Assembly: GCF_006345805.1 (NCBI RefSeq)
Contig: NC_043002.1
Location: 89,404,001-89,468,000, forward strand
From: Octopus sinensis
Lineage: Eukaryota
Direction of reading: 5' to 3'
Length of the DNA: 64,000 nucleotides
The notes under the pieces were generated by a model. That model was not told where the DNA came from, searched no databases, and worked only from the letters and a program-made list of their open reading frames with translations. Both the position numbers and the translations under genes were made by a program. Shown in pieces: positions 24,160-36,100 of the stretch (positions are counted from its first letter, which is position 1; each line of letters begins with the position of its first letter).

Positions 24160-27100
24160 TCGTGCACTTGCACACACTCACATGCACACAACCTTCCTTG
24201 TGCCATTGGATCAACAAATGACACCAGGTGACTTCCATTCCAAGCACTCTACTTATGGATTTTCCTGGAAGCTATAAAGATGGTTTCATATTGCCTTCCT
24301 TCTGGCTATTTCTTACAAGACACGAGTGAATAAAACAGGATGCATTGGTAAGTGAAGTACGTTGTAGGTTAGGTGTGAGAGGCCAGATATGATCAGTTTG
24401 AAGATAAGACAAGTAGAATATTTGGATTGGATATGGCCAGTTTAAAAGCTAAAGAGTTTATTAATTGAAGATAATCAGGTAGCTGGCTTTTTCATTGAGA
24501 TAGCCTATGAGTAGTAGAAGTTTAATAAAATGTCATATATAAAGGAAAAGGAACTCAATTGGAATTACTTTGATTTTCAGGAATGAATTCTGTAATGGAT
24601 GTTCTCAGGAGTGGTTCCTACAGGCCTAAGTAGAATCATTTAGCAATAAGAGTTTCAAATCTAAAAAATAAATAAAATGAAAATAGTCTTTGCTACATTA
24701 TATACATTTGACAGATATTTGTCCTTATCTTGTTTGTTGTTAACACATTTCAGCTGATATACTCTCCAGCCTTCATCAGGTATCTTGGGGAAATTTTGAA
24801 CCTGGATTCTCATTCCTAAGGTATTTTGCAATGTTGTTCTTGTTGTTATTATTATTCAGGTCACTGCCTGGAATTGAACTCAGAATCTTAGGGTTAAGAG
24901 CGCGGGCTACTAACCCCAAGATTCTGAGTTTGATTCCAGGCAGTGACCTAATAATAATATCGAAAAATACCTTAGGAATGAGAACCCAGGTCCGAAATTT
25001 CCCCAAGACACCTGATGAAGGCTGGAGGGTATATCAGTCGAAACGTTGTGTTAACAACAAACAAGATGAGGACAAATATCCGTCAAATGCAAATAATGTA
25101 CATAATTCTTCATCTCTTAAATATAGAACTGTATAATCTTTGCTAGTATAGCAGATGGGAAGGGGCTAAAATCATGGTATTAAAAATTCTTATATCTCCA
25201 ACAATGAACAAGAAACTGTTTATTAATATTTATTGAAATTTTTGAACGTAATCAGAGGAATAGTTGATATTAATCGTCATCATTTAACGTCTGCTGTCCA
25301 TGCTGGTATGGAAGCACCTCAGTTAGGGAAATATAGCTATAGATTTGAGTTAGTTTTTTTTATTAACCAAATATTTAATGCTTTCCTTTTTTTTATACTA
25401 GGTGTGTGCTTTTAACAGAACTGTATCAAAGGTTACTCATTTTTTGGAAAATGAAGCAAAAGGTACTAAAGTCATTGGTGCAACTTCACTTGAAGATATG
25501 GTGTCCAAATTGAAGAAACCTCGCCGAGTTATGATGTTGGTGAAAGCAGGCCAAGCAGTTGATGATTTTATTGATAAATTAGTAAGTTACTTTTAATTAA
25601 ATTTTTATTAATTTCAATTAAATTTCATTTTTACTGGTTAAATATTTATAATCGTGTGTTGACAATTTGTTAGAAAAAAAAAATTCTTACTACAAGATCC
25701 TGTTATCATAAAGCAAATCTTTACTCTACTGATTCTGTAATTTTGTTCTTTATTGGTTCGTAATGATTTTTCATTGTATATTAACAGCAATCTTTAAGTT
25801 CATTTTAAATAATGTAATGAATAATTAAGTAATTACTAGTAATTAATACAAGTAATTAAAAAATTTCATCAAGAGGGTACCTGTTTGTATGAAACATCTC
25901 CCTATTATACAATATCTGATTGCATTTAACACACAATCAAGACCGAATTTAATAATCTACTAAATAAAGACATTTTTTAAAACAATAATTTTCAAATTCT
26001 TAATTATTCATTGACTTGACTTGAGCAGCGTTCACCCGGGGTGGGTTGAGCTGGCTTCATTCATCCTCAATGCTGCATCTCTCACAGCATTGAGGGTGAA
26101 TGCTGCTCAAGTCAAGTCAATGAATAATTAAGAACTTGAAAATTTAAGAAGAATTTTCATGATAGGATCTTTATGGTTGTTATGAAAGAATATATCATCA
26201 TCATCGTTTAATGTCCGCTTTCCATGTTGGCATGGGTTGGACGGTTTGACTGAGGACTGGTGAGCCAGATGGCTGCACTAATATATCAAAATAGCTAGAA
26301 CCATTTTCATATCCACAGGTGCAGGTATGGCTGTGTAGATAAGAAGTTTGCTTTCCAACCCTATGGTCTTGGGGTTTAGTTCCACTGCATGGCACCTTGG
26401 GCAAGAGTCTTCTATAATAGCCCTGAGCTAACCAAAGCCATGTGAGTGAATTTGATAGATAAAAACTGGAAGAAGCCTGTCATATGTTTGTGTGTGTACT
26501 CTTGTCTTGACATCACATGAGAATTGTAAATGAGCATCACTGCCATTTAAGCAATACTGTTTGTTTCTAGTCTTTCATCAAAAACATGTCTGATCTTGGG
26601 GGAATGTTACTTTGCTTGGAAACAAATGAGGGATGGTGGAAGGAAGGGCGTCCAGCCACAGAAAATCTGCCTCAATAAGTTCCATCCACAGAAAAGTGAA
26701 TGTTAAATGATTTTCTATGGATTTTACATGGATTTTACATGGATCAGGTTCAGTTTGTTGAAGCAAATTTTCTACAGCCTGATTCTCTTCCTATCACCAA
26801 CTCTCACCTGTTTCCAAATCAAGTAAATATTTCTCCTGGACTTCTAAAAAGGATCAGCACTCATTGTAGCTGGACATGTTTTCTCAGATCATAAACAAAC
26901 AACACCACTTCTATAACAGTGACATTTGCTTACAATTAACATGCAATGTCAAAACAAGGAGAAACACACAAACATATTTGCTCTTACACACACGTGTGTG
27001 TGTGTGTGGTGTGTGTGTGTGTATGTATATATATATATATCATCATCATCATCATCATTGTTTAACGTCTGCTTTCCATGCTAGCATGGGTTGGACGATT

Positions 27101-30100
27101 TTGACTGAGGGCTGGCAACCAGATGGCTGCACCAGGCTCCAGTCTTGATCTGGCAGTTTCTACAGCTGGATGCCCTTCTTAACGCCAACCACTCCGAGAG
27201 TGTAGTGGGTGCTTTTTTACGTGCTACCGGCCCAGGGGCCAGTCAGGTGGTGCTGGCAATGACCTCGCTTGAATCTTTTACACGTGCCACCAGCACAGGT
27301 GCCAGTGAAGCGACGTTGGTAACGATCACGCTCGCATGGTGCCCTTGTACATGCCACGGGTACGGAAGCCAGTTGGCTGCTCTGGCAACGATCACGATCG
27401 GATATATACCCAATGTGCTTTTTCCAGTTTCCATCTACCAAATCCCCTCACAAAAGTTTGATTGACCCACAGCTATTATAGTATACTTCCAAGGTGCCAT
27501 GCAGTGGGATTGAAGCCATTTGGTTGGGAAGTGGAACTTTTTAATGACATAGCCATGCCTGCACCAAGAATATTAATGTTAAATCAATCAGTATTACAAT
27601 TACCATTGTCTGCAATATATTTTTAATTTAAATACAAGAGAAAATATGTTTTAACCAGTAGGTCTACATTGACTCGCAATTTCTAAAATATTGTTGTATT
27701 CAATGTGTGTCTGGAAACATTGCAAGAAGAAAATATGACAACTGTTTTTTCTTAATGTTATCATAGGTGCCCCTGCTTGAGAAAGGTGATATCATTATAG
27801 ATGGTGGAAACTCAGAGTATCAGGACACAACTGTAAGTTAGATTTTGTTTTAAGTCAAACTGTTTTATAATATTTACAAATCTAATTAGGAAAAAATTAT
27901 TTTACCTAAATAACTTTTGGAAAACTCTCATTTCTTCCTATCTTACATGCACACGCATACACTTGTACATATATTTACATACATGTTGTTTGTTCCTTCT
28001 CGAGCCATGCCTGGCTCATAAGGGCCGGTTTCTTGTTTTTTTTTTTTCTGATCTGAGGATAAAACTTGGGTGTATCTTTATGATCCTGAAACAAACTTTC
28101 AGTCCATGTATTGGCAAACATCTCACCTATTCTCCAAGGCTCGAGGAGTTTAAAAGCCAGTGATTGACACAGAAAGTCATGCTGACTTTTTTTCTGGAAT
28201 GAAAGACATTATTCTCATTGATTTTCTGAAACTTGGCTGTACTGTAAACATAGCAGACTGAGTGCAGATATGAGCAGCATATGGGAACAGGCATTAAGGA
28301 AGAATAGAAAAATATTAGATTTATAAACCCTAAAATTCACTCCATAATTGCCCACGGGCATATGGCATAGTGCTTAAGAGTGCGGGCTACTAACCCCAAG
28401 ATTCCAAGTTCGATTCCAAGCAGTGACCTGAACAATGATAATAATGATAACATACCTTAGGAATGAGAACCCAGGTTTGAAATTTCCCCAAGACACCTGA
28501 TGAAGGCTGGAGGGTATATCAGCCAAAATGTTGTGTTAACAACAAACAAGATATATATTTACACTATCCATTAAGAGGAAGAGACTGGCTAAGAATCTGA
28601 AAGTGATCTATGTTCACTATGACGATGCATGATCACATATATCTTTGGTAGGGCTGATCAGTGATCACCCATCCACCATACAACTTATAACTAGCTCCCT
28701 CTGCTTTTTGCCTGATTTTATAGCACAAAATGAAAGTGGCAGTGAAGAAATGGATAGAACAATGTACAGCTGAATATTTTCAAAGAAGATTCAAGAATGG
28801 TACAAATGCTCACTTGTAATGTGACTCTTTATATATCTTTAAATAAAGGAAGAGTTACTTGGCCAACATGTACAATTTGAATAGCTTATTGTCATCATCA
28901 TCATCGTTTAACGTCCGCTTTCCATGCTAGCATGGGTTGGGTGAATGACTGAGGGTTGGCGAACCAGATGGCTGCACCAGGCTTCAATCTTGATCTGGCA
29001 GAGTTTCTACAGCTGGATGCCCTTCCTAACTCCAACCACTCTAAGAGTGTAGTGGATGCTTTTACGTGCCACCGGCACGGAGCCAGTCAGGCGGTACTCA
29101 CAATGACCTCGCTTGAATCTTTTACACATGCCACCGGCACAGGTGCCAGTAAGGCGATGCTGGTAACGATCACGCTCGAAGGGTGTCTTTTACGTGTCAC
29201 CAGCACAGAGGCCAGATAGCCACTCTGACAGCGATCACGCTCGGGTGGTGCTCTTAATACCCTGCTAGCACGGGGCTCGAGTGCCATAAGGCGACGCTGG
29301 TAACGATCATGCTCAAATGGTGCCTTTTAAGTGCCACTGGCACAGAAGCCGGTTAGCCGCTCTGTCAATGATCACACTCGTATGGTGCTCTTTGCAGTTA
29401 ATAAAAAATGTTATCATCACTTTTGCATTAATTTCGGTACAACCCTTGTGTATATAGATGTGCATGTGTGTATGCACATACATGATGTGGTAGTCTTTTG
29501 AAAGACAGTCGTACGATTTCTTGCTGAACAACCTGCACAAATAATTTGTTTATAGCGATGAAATGTTTGTGTTGTATATTCGTTCACTCCCTCCATATAA
29601 TCAACATTACCTGAACAGGTGCATAGTGTACCATACATCATATTTTAACATGATCACAGCGCAATACAAAATGAAGTGTTTTACTCATGAACACAATGCA
29701 TCACCTGGTCCTGAAATTTAACCCACACTCTAACAATAATGAGCACAACAACCTAACTGCGAGGTTGTGTGCCTTCATATACATATATACATGTATCTTT
29801 TTCTTTTTCTTAGCGTCGTTGCAAAAGTTTGGAAGCTCAAGGTCTCTTGTACATAGGAACTGGTGTTAGTGGCGGTGAAGAAGGTGCACGTCATGGTCCC
29901 TCTATAATGCCTGGAGGATCTCCTGCAGCTTGGTGAGTTTATTATCCAGTTTTCTTGTAGCCTTATTTCAGTATCATTTCAAAACAATCGCTTTACATAT
30001 ATAATAACTTTCTTAAATACAGTTCTATATTTAAGAGATGAAGAATTATGTACATTATGTACGTAATTTACATTATTTACATTTGACAGATATTTGTCCT

Positions 30101-33100
30101 CATCTTGTTTGTTGTTAACACAACGTTTTGGCTGATATACCCTCCAGACTTCATTAGGTGTCTTGGGGAAATTTCGAACCTGGGTTCTCATTCCTAAGGT
30201 ATTTTTACGATGTTGTTATTATTATTATTATTATAATGCAGCTGTGGTAGGTTATACAAAGGCAAAACTTGCCGCCCCCTCAAAATAAGTGTAGAAGAAT
30301 ATCACAAAGCTGTGACACGAGGAGATATTGATAAATCGAGTATAGCTGATCATGAATGGAAAAATAGAGACCACCTCCCCCTGTGGGATGAAGTTAAAAT
30401 AATAGACAGAGAACACCACTGGAAAATATGAAATCTCAAAGAAGCAGCACATATGCTAGGATACAACAACCTCTTAAACAGACCAAGTACAGATATGAGC
30501 AGCATATGGGAACAGGTATTAAGGAAGGATAGAAAAATATTAGATTTATAAGCCCTAAAATTCACTCCATAATTGCTCATGGGCAAATGGCATAGTGGTT
30601 AAGAGTGTGGGCTACTAACCCCAAGATTCCAAGTTTGATTCCAAGCAGTGACCTGAACAATAATAATAATAATAATAACATCGAAAAAATACCTTAGGAA
30701 TGAGAACCCAGGTTTGAAATTTCCTCAAGACACCTGATGAAGGCTGAAGGGTATATCAGCCGAAATGTGTTAACAACAAACAAGATGAGGATAAATATCC
30801 GTCAAATGTAAATAATGAACTTCCTTAAATATTGTGTATAAAATGTTTTTCGTTAAATCTATTGTGTAATTTTCAAAATATATTGACTTTCTATGATTTG
30901 TCTTTTCTTCCTTATAGGCCACATGTGAAGGATATTTTTCAATCTATATCTGCCAAAGCTAACAATGAACCTTGCTGTAACTGGGTAAGCTTTTATTCTT
31001 TTTCATTATTTTAATTGATTTTATTAATTCAAACTGGTGTTATAAACGGGTTTCCAGTTCTAGAAACCATGCCAAAACAGACATTAGAGCTTGACATAGT
31101 CTTGTAACTTGCTGGCTACTGTCAAACCATCTAGCCCATTATTTACATTCGACGGATGTTTGTCCGCATCTTGTTTGTTGTTAACACAACGTTTCGGCTG
31201 ATATACCTTCCAGCCTTCATCAGGTGTCTTGGGGAAATTTCGAACCTGGGTTCTCATTCCTAAGGTATTTTTACGATGTTGTTATTATTATTATTATTAT
31301 AATGCAGCTGTGGTAGGTTATACAAAGGCAAAACTTGCCGCCCCCTCAAAATAAGTGTAGAAGAATATCACAAAGCTGTGACACGAGGAGATATTGATAA
31401 ATCGAGTATAGCTGATCATGAATGGAAAAATAGAGACCACCTCCCCCTGTGGGATGAAGTTAAAATAATAGACAGAGAACACCACTGGAAAATATGAAAT
31501 CTCAAAGAAGCAGCACATATGCTAGGATACAACAACCTCTTAAACAGACCAAGTACAGATATGAGCAGCATATGGGAACAGGTATTAAGGAAGGATAGAA
31601 AAATATTAGATTTATAAGCCCTAAAATTCACTCCATAATTGCTCATGGGCAAATGGCATAGTGGTTAAGAGTGTGGGCTACTAACCCCAAGATTCCAAGT
31701 TTGATTCCAAGCAGTGACCTGAACAATAATAATAATAATAATAATAACATCGAAAAAATACCTTAGGAATGAGAACCCAGGTTTGAAATTTCCTCAAGAC
31801 ACCTGATGAAGGCTGAAGGGTATATCAGCCGAAATGTGTTAACAACAAACAAGATGAGGATAAATATCCGTCAAATGTAAATAATGTAAATAATGAACTT
31901 CCTTAAATATTGTGTATAAAATGTTTTTCGTTAAATCTATTGTGTAATTTTCAAAATATATTGACTTTCTATGATTTGTCTTTTCTTCCTTATAAGGCCA
32001 CATGTGAAGGATATTTTTCAATCTATATCTGCCAAAGCTAACAATGAACCTTGCTGTAACTGGGTAAGCTTTTATTCTTTTTCATTATTTTAATTGATTT
32101 TATTAATTCAAACTGGTGTTATAAACGGGTTTCCAGTTCTAGAAACCATGCCAAAACAGACATTAGAGCTTGACATAGTCTTGTAACTTGCTGGCTACTG
32201 TCAAACCATCTAGCCCATTATTTACATTCGACGGATGTTTGTCCGCATCTTGTTTGTTGTTAACACAACGTTTCGGCTGATATACCTTCCAGCCTTCATC
32301 AGGTGTCTTGGGGAAATTTCAAACCTGGGTTCTCATTCCTAAGGTATTTTTCGATGTTATTATTATTGTTCAGGTCACTGCTTGGAATCAAACTCGGAAT
32401 CTTGGGGTTAGTAGCCCACTCTCTTAACCACTACGCCATATGCCCGTGGGTTAAGAGAGTGGGCTACCAACCCTAAGATTCCGAGTTCGATTCCAAGCAG
32501 TGACCTGAATGCTAACAATAATAATGATAATAATAATAATAATAACAAAAAATGTTAGGAATGAGAACCCAGGTTCGAAATTTTCCCAAGACACCTGAAG
32601 AAGGCTGGAGGGTCTATCAGCCGGAACGTTGTGTTAACAACAAACAAGATGAAGACAAATATCCATTGAATGTAAATAATGTACATAATTCCTCATCTCT
32701 TAAATATAGAATTGTATCATCTAGCCCATGTCAGCATGGAAAGCAAATACTAAATGATGGTGATGATGATGATACCATGATAAAATGTGGCTAGTACACA
32801 CTATCAAGTGAACATGTAAGGGCCTCCATCCATAAAAACTAAACCAAAAGTGAAATATACAAGTGTGATATATCTTCCAACTCATGTTGGAAAAAGTATC
32901 TCAATAAAATTAGACTTGGAACATGGTGACCTATCCAACCCATACCAGCATGGAAAGTGAACCTTATACATCCTGTGATTATATAAGTTCTGGTGTTTAG
33001 CTGTCATAAAGCCAAATGCAGAGTCAGTGAAAATACAATATCCATTGTACAGCAAACAAAATAACTTTAATTTATTTTGGAATTAAACTTACTTGATGTG

Positions 33101-36100
33101 AGTTTAGAAAAATATCTAATGAATATGAAAATGTTTGGATACTGAATTCCATAAGATAAGCAATGTGAATATGAGAGACAAGTTCAGCCAAACTAAGGAA
33201 ATGGTTGTATGTTTAACCTTTTCGTTACTGTATTTATTTTGTGATGCTCTGTGTTTCTTTCAGTTACTCTAAATATAACAAAGGATTTAGTAAAATAACT
33301 TAGTTATCATTCAGCTAGTGTTAGGAACATAAATTATGACTAAGGTTTGGTGGAAGATTTTAATTCAGAACTTTTGAAAACAAGACATTTGTACTCAGAG
33401 CCAGAGCCGGTTTCAGCCAGGTTGGTAACAAAAGGGTTAAAAGCATCCATCATTGTTTGCAAGAGGGATTTATAAATGAACTGAGGATAGTTAAAAATTA
33501 TCATCATTTAACGTCTGTTTTCCACGCTGGCATGGGTTGGACGGTTTGGTTTAAGTTGGCCAGCTGAAGACCTGTCCAGGCTTCATGTCTTTTGGCATGT
33601 TTTCTATGGCTGAATGCCCTTCATAACACCAATCACTTTACAGAGTGTAGTGGGTGCTTTTACACAGCACCAGCATGAGTGCTTTTTATGTGGCACCAGT
33701 ACTCATGAGCCTGCAGGATTAGGCTTGCTCAGCTGAAGAGGTACGCAGGGGACATGCCTGTGTGTAAGGGCAACCACAATTTTGCTTAGCTTGACATGTC
33801 ATCCCCATTGTGAGGCCCAACATCTGAATATCATTTCTCACTACTTCGTCCCATATAAAAATGTGCAAATTCAGTCAGTTTGTGTCACTACAGAAAAATG
33901 CTTGTTAAACTGATGTGAGTAGTACAAGGCTTAAACCAGGTACTCTGATTTAACATGGCTGTTTACTCCTAAATCACTAATCTATTCATTTGATATCTAA
34001 TTTGCTATTTGTTGTTTGAATTCTAAAAGAATCATGAGGGTCATAAAACTAACATTAAAATATGGTATGCTAGTCTTTAAAAAGAAATGTGACTGTATAA
34101 TTCTTATGCTTGTTTTTAGATGAATCAATTTTTTTATTTAAAGGTTGGAGAAGAGGGTGCAGGCCATTTTGTAAAGATGGTACATAATGGTATAGAATAT
34201 GGAGATATGCAACTAATTTGTGAAGCATACCATTTGCTGAAGGATGTACTAGAATTGTCTCCAGCAGAAATGGCACAGGTTTGTTTGAATTTCTTTACTT
34301 AATGAAAACAGTAATTATCCATTCTTAATTCCGTATGATATCAAGATGACAAGAAAATTCTTATTGTTTTGTTATGGTTTCTTCGATCATTGTTAGAATA
34401 AAGAACACAGTTACACAGAATAAGGAACACAGGCGCAGGAGTGGCTGTGTGGTAAGTAGCTTGCTAACCAACCACATGGTTCCGGGTTCAGTCCCACTGC
34501 ATGGCATCTTGGGCAAGTGTCTTCTGCTATAGCCCCGGGCCGACCAATGCCTTGTGAGTGGATTTGGAAGACGGAAACTGTAAGAAGCCTGTCGTATATA
34601 TGTATATGTATGTGTGTCTGTGTTTGTCCCCCTAGCATTGCTTGACAACCGATGCTGGTGTGTTTACGTCCCCGTCACTTAGCGGTTCGGCAAAAGAGAA
34701 TAAGTACTGGGCTTACAAAGAATAAGTCCCGGGGTCGATTTGCTCGACTAAAGGTGGTGCTCCAGCATGGCCGCAGTCAAATGACTGAAACAAGTAAAAG
34801 AATAAAAGAGTAAAGAGTTGATATTAACTTTTTTTAATGTGGGATCCTGTTCATAACGATGTACTTACAGTATATATTTTTATCGTTTCTTTTCGTACAT
34901 CCAACATATTTGATTTAGTAAGGTGTTGCAAAGTTCAGCTGCGTACCTTTTAATTCCAGATCCACCCTTCTGAATTCTGACAGATTTTGCAATGAGAGGC
35001 CATCAGTTTACAGAAGTCACATGCTCTGTGTGGCTAAAATGGCTAATAGTTGACTGGGAGAGAAGTTTTGTGGATTCTCACTGAAAATTGAATTCCTGAC
35101 TGTATCTTCCTCCTTAATACATTATTTGAACGGCTGCTACAAGCCATTTCCTAAAGATTGCCTTTCATCTTTTTGTAGTGGTCACTCAGTATCCCATACT
35201 ATAATGACGTAGACCGTAGTTTTTAACAGCACCATTATCATTATTTAACATCCACTTGTCCATGCTTGCATGAGTCCAATGGAATTTGCTGAGGCAAATT
35301 TTCTATGGTGAGATTCCCTTCCGGTTGCTAACCCTCACCTGTTTCCCAAGCAAGGTAATATTTCTCCATGACCAGGCATATTTACCATGGAAGACTAGAA
35401 ATAAACAGCATCATTTGCTTGACAGTGATGCTTCTTTACAAATATCTCATGATGTCAAGACAAAGGTATACACAAACACATACATGCATGTACAGTGAGC
35501 TTCTTCCAGTTTCCGTCTACCAAATTCACTCATATATTGGGAGAAAATCTGAAACATTAGACAGTGAGATGGAAAGATGTCAAAATCATGATTTTCTAAA
35601 GAACTTTAATAGCATAAATGAAGTAAGCTAAATAATTAGATCTGTCTTTAAGCCCAAATGCAATTGTTGACTTAATTTGATGATAATCAAATAAAATTAC
35701 AGCATATATTTTTGTGTATGCCATTTTCTGTTGGACTTATATTACCTGTTCTGGCCAGCCTCTATCTTGGTTATATGATTACAAGAAAAATCATTTATGA
35801 AGTCATTTACTCTCTCTCTCTCTCTCTCTCTCTCTAATCCTGCCTCTTTCTGCTGTATCATCATTACTATTTGCTGCTCTTCACCCCCATGCTGGGCTGA
35901 CTGAACACTAAAAGTTGATCTCTATATATATATAAAGACATTTCGTCTGTGTTACATATTTACAAAATTTCATGCTTATTTTCCTTTAATTTAATGAAGC
36001 TATTGCTCATTTATTTTTTCTTATTCAGGCATCACTAAATATTTTGTTTCTATATCAATAATTCAAGAGAAAATACACTAAAACTGTTTCCCCGTGGGTT

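Follow-up and report, generated by a model that had tools for sequence, protein, structure and literature searches.

Probable recent tandem duplication of PGD exon 6 in Octopus sinensis by exchange between intronic Penelope-like repeats

Does the PGD gene of Octopus sinensis carry exon 6 twice, and if so, how did the second copy arise and what can the gene do with it? The question is posed by a 64-kb window, the whole stretch of DNA analyzed here (CM016864.1 of assembly GCA_006345805.1, positions 89,404,001-89,468,000); coordinates below are those of the window unless another locus is named. An earlier note on this DNA had described a duplicated exon with a chimeric repeat at its join, and had offered either a splicing function or a false duplication in explanation. 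The structural part of that account (duplicated exon, hybrid scar and frameshift stop) stands, while positive evidence for the functional alternatives was lacking. The probable explanation, we conclude, is that O. sinensis PGD has undergone a genuine tandem duplication of about 1.07 kb, very recent and generated by exchange between two intronic repeats designated R1 and R3. That the duplication is real, by whatever route it arose, is rated as probable too, perhaps slightly more so.

The two tandem copies occupy 30071-31136 (1066 bp) and 31137-32215 (1079 bp) and are followed by a partial third unit at 32216-32370. The duplicated unit is the sole long near-identical direct repeat in the window. 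Each full copy contains the 67-nt exon, and the coding sequence and the GTAAGC donors of the two exons are identical, as the earlier note had it. The exons and the one difference at their acceptors are:

30918-30984, plus strand: exon 6a, 67 nt; its TATAG acceptor is ancestral and its donor is GTAAGC.
31997-32063, plus strand: exon 6b, 67 nt, identical in sequence to 6a, with a TATAAG acceptor and a GTAAGC donor.
31994, plus strand: derived insertion of one A, which turns the copy b acceptor from TATAG to TATAAG (TAG to AAG).

The AAG acceptor of copy b is of the kind also found at PGD exons 7 and 8, a parallel that had been drawn correctly. Aligned from the switch point in one repeat to the same point in the next, the copies show no substitution and three gaps over 1066 aligned bases, in agreement with the earlier statement that indels alone separate them outside the R repeat. 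In addition to the A at 31994, copy b carries three extra bases in an (AAT)n run (31725-31727) and a 9-bp tandem repeat of TGTAAATAA (31874-31882).

The join between the copies falls within a repeat, and three antisense repeats bear on its origin:

30020-30236, minus strand: R1, antisense 3' region of the element assigned below to the Penelope-like group, in intron 5; ends in an (ATT)n run. The portion within the duplication begins at 30071.
31137-31302, minus strand: R2, the hybrid repeat at the duplication junction.
32216-32448, minus strand: R3, the intron 6 copy of the element, likewise antisense; proposed downstream partner of the exchange.

R2 is of R3 type from 31137 to 31221 and of R1 type from 31242 onward, with a 20-bp switch interval at 31222-31241 between the two. 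Against R1 it has eight mismatches at 31150-31221 and none thereafter; against R3 it is identical as far as 31241 and differs at 31242, 31273 (a one-base gap), 31281 and 31290. Repeats of the R1 and R3 types measure about 150 bp and show about 92% identity, and the stretch of perfect match at the switch amounts to only 20 bases. In a seven-sequence alignment, with two outgroup species to polarize the states, O. vulgaris shares the R1-versus-R3 difference at six of eight sites on the left and at two of three on the right (G/A at 31242 and the extra A at 31273), and these differences are therefore older than both the duplication and the species split. Since most of the diagnostic sites already separate orthologous R1 and R3 in O. 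vulgaris, the alignment identifies R2 as a true recombinant, R3 on the left and R1 on the right, with a single switch within 31222-31241. The middle repeat thus has the one clean change of type first described for it, and its reading as the scar of an unequal exchange is backed by R1 and R3 orthologues in both O. vulgaris and O. bimaculoides.

Orthologous loci of these two species were compared with the window (O. vulgaris, L004, GCA_951406725.2; O. bimaculoides, L003, GCA_001194135.2). Each has a single exon 6, lying between the orthologues of R1 and R3, which are at 31664-31816 and 32730-32880 in the O. vulgaris locus and at 27401-27559 and 28731-28890 in that of O. bimaculoides. In O. vulgaris the two orthologues are spaced 1066 bp apart, the length of the duplicated unit. 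The locus therefore presents what is expected of a repeat-mediated duplication, namely flanking repeats in the same orientation, a head-to-tail unit equal to their spacing, and a hybrid repeat with a single switch. Two length differences were also seen between the loci. About 845 bp of O. sinensis sequence, including one copy of the element (27962-28805), is missing at the corresponding point in O. vulgaris (L004 position 30436); the O. bimaculoides counterpart is of similar length to that of O. sinensis, and a deletion or assembly loss in O. vulgaris is probable. In O. bimaculoides, about 273 extra bases without counterpart in O. sinensis or O. vulgaris lie between the R1 orthologue and the open reading frame (ORF) remnant of the element (L003 27560-27832).

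The age of the event can be estimated from the same comparison. Within the duplicated unit, 26 of 1059 aligned sites (2.46%) differ between O. sinensis and O. vulgaris, and the split of these species is quoted as 2.5 million years (My) (PMC10700109). At this rate about nine substitutions per My are expected between the copies over 1066 bp and none is present, so the duplication would be younger than about 0.3 My (95% bound). Where the 9-bp and 1-bp indels lie, copy a agrees with both O. vulgaris and O. bimaculoides, and in the (AAT)n run it matches O. bimaculoides, the run of O. vulgaris being shorter still. Copy a thus holds the outgroup states, and copy b carries three derived insertions.

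What does a second exon 6 do to the message? PGD exons 2-14 lie within the window on the plus strand; the 13 coding exons were located with a 6-phosphogluconate dehydrogenase probe, and their GT-AG boundaries were placed by hand. Exon 1 (MSQQK) sits 487 bp upstream of the window start, so the numbering of the duplicated exon as exon 6 is correct. The spliced product is 478 aa long with either exon 6 copy. It is 100% identical to O. sinensis XP_029637234.1/XP_029637235.1 (483 aa) and matches Pfam NAD_binding_2 at residues 2-169 and 6PGD at residues 176-464, and the protein identity and domain matches together point firmly to PGD. The exons on either side of the duplication are:

29814-29932, plus strand: PGD exon 5, ending in TG.
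34144-34278, plus strand: exon 7, with an AAG acceptor; encodes the start of the 6PGD C-terminal domain.

Exon 5 ends in TG, and the first base of exon 6 therefore completes a codon. When 6a is spliced to 6b, the messenger RNA runs from TGTAACTGG directly into GCCACATGTG, the frame is shifted (GCC ACA TGT ... AGC TAA), and a TAA stop is met 15 codons into 6b (32039-32041), before exon 7 is reached and with eight exons still to follow. The earlier claim that inclusion of both copies truncates the enzyme is borne out by this computed stop. The frame is likewise lost if neither copy is included; a message with 6a alone encodes the same protein as one with 6b alone. A functional PGD messenger RNA thus contains exactly one copy of exon 6, and no new protein is made. 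Messengers that include both should be directed to nonsense-mediated decay. By default, recognition of both exons is expected, since they are identical and have the same signals. In human genes with out-of-frame exon duplications, both of the identical exons are spliced by default. The T-to-A change at position -3 of the 6b acceptor, if real, would weaken 6b somewhat and tilt the choice toward 6a.

The public records at the locus were compared with this model. RefSeq isoforms X1 and X2 of PGD have an identical 483-aa sequence. In a public gene table the locus appears as two neighboring "genes" that share one 483-aa product, and the table breaks between them exactly where 6a ends (30984) and 6b begins (31997). 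Taken with X1 and X2, this break suggests one annotation model for each exon copy. The two isoforms are weak evidence for two exons, because RNA-seq reads do not distinguish the copies.

These results suggest the following history. The 3' regions of Penelope-like elements in the same orientation, R1 in intron 5 and R3 in intron 6, would have exchanged by unequal crossing-over or, just as plausibly, through a template switch during replication, from R3 back to R1. Both routes would leave the hybrid R2 and a second exon 6, and the insertions in copy b would fit slippage in error-prone synthesis of the re-copied unit. Functional PGD would then arise only from transcripts that skip one copy. Such an allele is most likely a lineage-specific structural variant, perhaps polymorphic or heterozygous, and neutral to mildly harmful. 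It is probably not an evolved splicing device.

Several observations weigh against this history. The first concerns the insertions themselves. In 21,989 three-way flanking columns, 234 substitutions, 18 insertions and 23 deletions are specific to O. sinensis, and 282 substitutions, 26 insertions and 23 deletions to O. vulgaris. Under the O. sinensis spectrum, three indels without a substitution are improbable, at (41/275)^3 or about 0.003, and if insertions alone are counted the figure is (18/252)^3 or about 0.0004. Second, look-ups in public assemblies found none on record of the junction-specific 57-aa ORF, the exon-6a ORF or the copy-b-specific 40-aa ORF, and a pattern scan of metagenomes for a unique intron stretch gave no match. 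Third, duplicated BUSCO genes make up 5.2% of the O. sinensis assembly and 0.5% and 0.4% of the sister assemblies (PMC10700109). Fourth, both RefSeq models could stem purely from RNA-seq reads mapping equally to each copy. Finally, were default splicing to include both exons, fixation of the duplication would severely impair an essential enzyme, and the allele would then have to be rare, heterozygous or efficiently skipped.

For the insertions, general indel noise was considered as a source and rejected, as O. sinensis has no excess of lineage-specific indels over O. vulgaris in the 22 kb of flanks (41 vs 49). Two origins remain. The insertions may be consensus errors limited to the duplicated segment, in which reads can be placed ambiguously, or they may be the product of slippage in error-prone synthesis of the re-copied unit. 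Error-prone synthesis with slippage is established for break-induced replication. Given these two possible origins, the AAG acceptor of 6b should itself be treated as unverified.

The same insertions enter into the alternative that survives best, an assembly artifact, which we consider possible but doubtful. The animal would then have one exon 6, and the second unit and its three insertions would have come from assembly, polishing or gap handling of PacBio and Hi-C data. The single copy in both sister species, the excess of duplicated BUSCO genes and the empty look-ups for the junction are all in keeping with it, as is the confinement of the insertions to one copy that shows no substitution, a pattern more like consensus noise than evolution. 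The insertions do not fit it throughout, however. Those of 3 and 9 bp are of slippage type and atypical of single-base consensus errors, indels specific to O. sinensis are not in excess in the flanks, and substitutions of the kind that separate haplotypes are absent between the copies. The combination of no substitution and three insertions in fact fits neither haplotypes nor an ordinary mutation spectrum.

The form of the join also speaks against an artifact. It was made in exact register within repeats of about 150 bp and about 92% identity, with 20 identical bases at the switch, and long-read overlappers would not be expected to join on so short a match. R1 and R3 retain their own orthologous states and are not blended. 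False duplications are reportedly found most often at gaps or contig ends, whereas the window has no run of N, and none lies within 30 kb of the duplication on either side; a duplication at a scaffold gap was accordingly ruled out for this window. The earlier point that a misassembly, too, would have its join in a repeat therefore carries less weight than it seems to: a join within a repeat is indeed what is seen, but 20 identical bases are probably far below what long-read joining needs, and there is no gap nearby. On balance, a recent exchange between R1 and R3 that is present on real molecules remains the probable reading.

The nature of the repeats was established indirectly. The unit consists, in order, of an antisense arm (R), a 314-bp ORF remnant with one stop, and a sense arm (V):

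30237-30550, plus strand: copy a of the GIY-YIG ORF remnant, assigned to the C-terminal endonuclease domain of a Penelope-like element; one internal stop.
31303-31616, plus strand: copy b of the remnant, identical to copy a.
30578-30841, plus strand: Va, sense 3' region with a tRNA-like stretch, (AAT)n and tail; complementary to R1, R2 and R3.
31644-31898, plus strand: Vb, duplicate of Va with the derived 3-bp and 9-bp insertions.
32449-32714, plus strand: Vc, sense copy, head to head with R3.

Searched directly against Pfam and PDB sequences, the ORF remnant gave nothing meaningful. A profile built from its relatives matched 3872 proteins, and in the long matches an RVT_1 domain lies upstream of the matched C-terminal domain, with a weak PF01541 GIY-YIG match in one. 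Endonuclease-positive Penelope-like elements have just such an architecture, a reverse transcriptase with a GIY-YIG endonuclease C-terminal to it (PMC8557442). This order of domains is supplied by the long relatives and not by the remnant itself. Judged from these relatives, the repeats represent 3' portions of a Penelope-like retroelement, of which the window contains truncated tails only.

A candidate hammerhead-like motif, which by eye and by pattern search fits the published descriptor, lies on the minus strand of R2 and R3 (31183-31228 and 32262-32307) and has the form GACAC-CUGAUGA-A-GGCUG...CAGCC-GAA-ACGU-U/GUGUU. It has an extra base between positions 9 and 10.1, a G10.1-C11.1 pair and a palindromic helix III, and the same three features are described for minimal hammerheads in Penelope-like element repeats (PMC4209133). 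Rfam, at both gathering and permissive thresholds, returned no family, hammerhead included. With the ORF relatives and this candidate motif in view, the label "pLTR" used in the earlier note is reasonable (PMC4209133). Both of these PGD-antisense copies look intact, including the minimal motif of R3. Degenerate copies occur at 30729-30777, 31798-31846 and about 32590-32640 on the plus strand and at 30117-30162 on the minus strand; every copy on the PGD sense strand, and that of R1, is mutated in the core or in helix III.

Other features of the element were noted. A tRNA-like stretch lies between the end of its ORF and the (AAT)n tail (30578-30660, 31644-31726 and 32366-32509), in which ARAGORN called no tRNA, and the short copies resemble a short interspersed element that shares its tail with the Penelope-like element. 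Further truncated copies are found in PGD introns at 24694-25131, 28254-28580 and 32216-32714, the first and last of these as head-to-head inverted pairs, an arrangement typical of Penelope-like insertions. In comparison with Penelope-like elements (PMC4209133; PMC8557442), the element shares the C-terminal GIY-YIG remnant with longer relatives bearing an upstream reverse transcriptase, the truncated copies in inverted pairs, and the hammerhead-like candidate motif CUGAUGA-A-GGCUG...CAGCC-GAA-ACGU-U. It departs from those described in that all of its copies in the window are 5'-truncated, Rfam models do not score the motif, the motif copies on the PGD sense strand are mutated, and a tRNA-like stretch separates the ORF end from the tail.

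Could the duplicated arms control the choice of exon? The pre-messenger RNA contains three forward and three reverse arms, forming inverted repeats of 104-169 nt across 30066-32714, and a very stable duplex is predicted for each of the nine forward-by-reverse combinations (-218 to -252 kcal/mol vs -48 for shuffled controls). A Va:R2 pairing would hold 6a in a loop of 380 nt, and a Vb:R3 pairing would hold 6b in a loop of 390 nt; such a geometry, with pairings that enclose one exon or the other, has been proposed for mutually exclusive splicing (PMC6071210). Were the duplication real and fixed, pairings that enclose 6a only (R1:Vb with Va:R2) or 6b only (R2:Vc with Vb:R3) might have enforced a choice of one exon from the moment of its birth. 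We regard this as improbable, because the nearest-neighbor hairpins R1:Va, R2:Vb and R3:Vc would leave both 6a and 6b exposed. If true, the locus would offer a snapshot, less than about 0.3 My old and with its scar intact, of the route by which duplication creates competing structures and so mutually exclusive splicing. The single exon 6 of O. vulgaris and of O. bimaculoides likewise lies between an inverted pair, and long intronic duplexes of this kind could attract RNA editing or back-splicing in octopus.

More broadly, the second exon might be part of a regulated splicing device, as one of a mutually exclusive pair maintained through nonsense-mediated decay or competing RNA structures, or with 6b as a poison exon that tunes PGD. 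This is very unlikely. Both exons share a 67-nt length and phase and their joint inclusion is penalized by a stop, one known route to exclusivity (PMC6071210), and the duplicated arms and the AAG acceptor of 6b could be taken as its controls. The exons are identical, however, so that no distinct isoforms result and the choice leaves the protein unchanged; the nearest-neighbor pairings enclose neither exon, and AAG acceptors function normally at exons 7 and 8. For a poison exon, the premature stop with eight exons downstream is present but conservation is not, the second copy being absent from O. vulgaris and O. bimaculoides, and a duplication without a substitution is too young for selection to have shaped it. 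A protein search with the peptide of exon 5, 6a and frameshifted 6b turned up no transcript fragments bearing on the choice of PGD exon; as no octopus-derived fragment whatever was returned, it is uninformative either way. An older duplication, soon after the split from O. vulgaris, with copies homogenized by gene conversion, is the least credible alternative: near-identical tandem copies are good conversion substrates and the duplication is specific to O. sinensis, but conversion would be apt to remove the three indels too and to blur the sharp marker pattern of R1, R2 and R3, both of which are intact, and zero substitutions over 1066 bp are more simply explained by recent origin.

Two neighbors of PGD were seen in the loci compared. 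Sec62, on the minus strand, is the upstream neighbor in all three species, and an RNF34-like gene, also on the minus strand, lies downstream of PGD in O. vulgaris, whose locus extends that far.

If the duplication by exchange between R1 and R3 is real, it is a well-dated case of exon duplication by dispersed intronic retroelements, with both parental repeats, the hybrid and two outgroup genomes at hand, in a housekeeping gene where double inclusion is clearly harmful. It would also provide natural tests of how the spliceosome deals with two identical adjacent exons, and of whether a re-copied unit carries the slippage errors expected of error-prone repair synthesis. If it is an artifact, the locus is a caution for annotation, as RefSeq already has two "isoforms" of the same protein at PGD.

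Among known systems, intragenic tandem duplications of exons between Alu repeats are well documented in human disease genes, including BRCA1 exon 13, DMD and LDLR. Like these, the PGD event involves retroelements in the same orientation in flanking introns, a head-to-tail unit equal to the repeat spacing, a hybrid repeat with short identity at the join, and an out-of-frame exon that leads to a premature stop. It differs in that the repeats are 3' parts of about 150 bp assigned to a Penelope-like element, that it occurs in an octopus and in a reference assembly rather than a patient, and that one copy bears three small insertions. With false duplications of assemblies it shares a near-identical extra copy, a duplicate-rich assembly and a single copy in sister genomes; unlike them, it is not at a gap or contig end, and is a 1.07-kb tandem unit joined in register within a diverged repeat. 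Tandem duplication of exons is described as a source of mutually exclusive exons (Kondrashov and Koonin 2001; Ivanov and Pervouchine 2018, PMC6071210). The PGD copies resemble such exons in being adjacent and homologous, of equal length and phase and not a multiple of three, and in having intronic stem-loop arms duplicated with the exon so that competing pairings arise; they differ in being identical, in yielding no isoform diversity, in lacking conservation and in being younger than the species (PMC6071210). We conclude that the PGD event is of a known kind, probably a repeat-mediated exon duplication, and that, real or artifactual, it implies no new protein function or mechanism.

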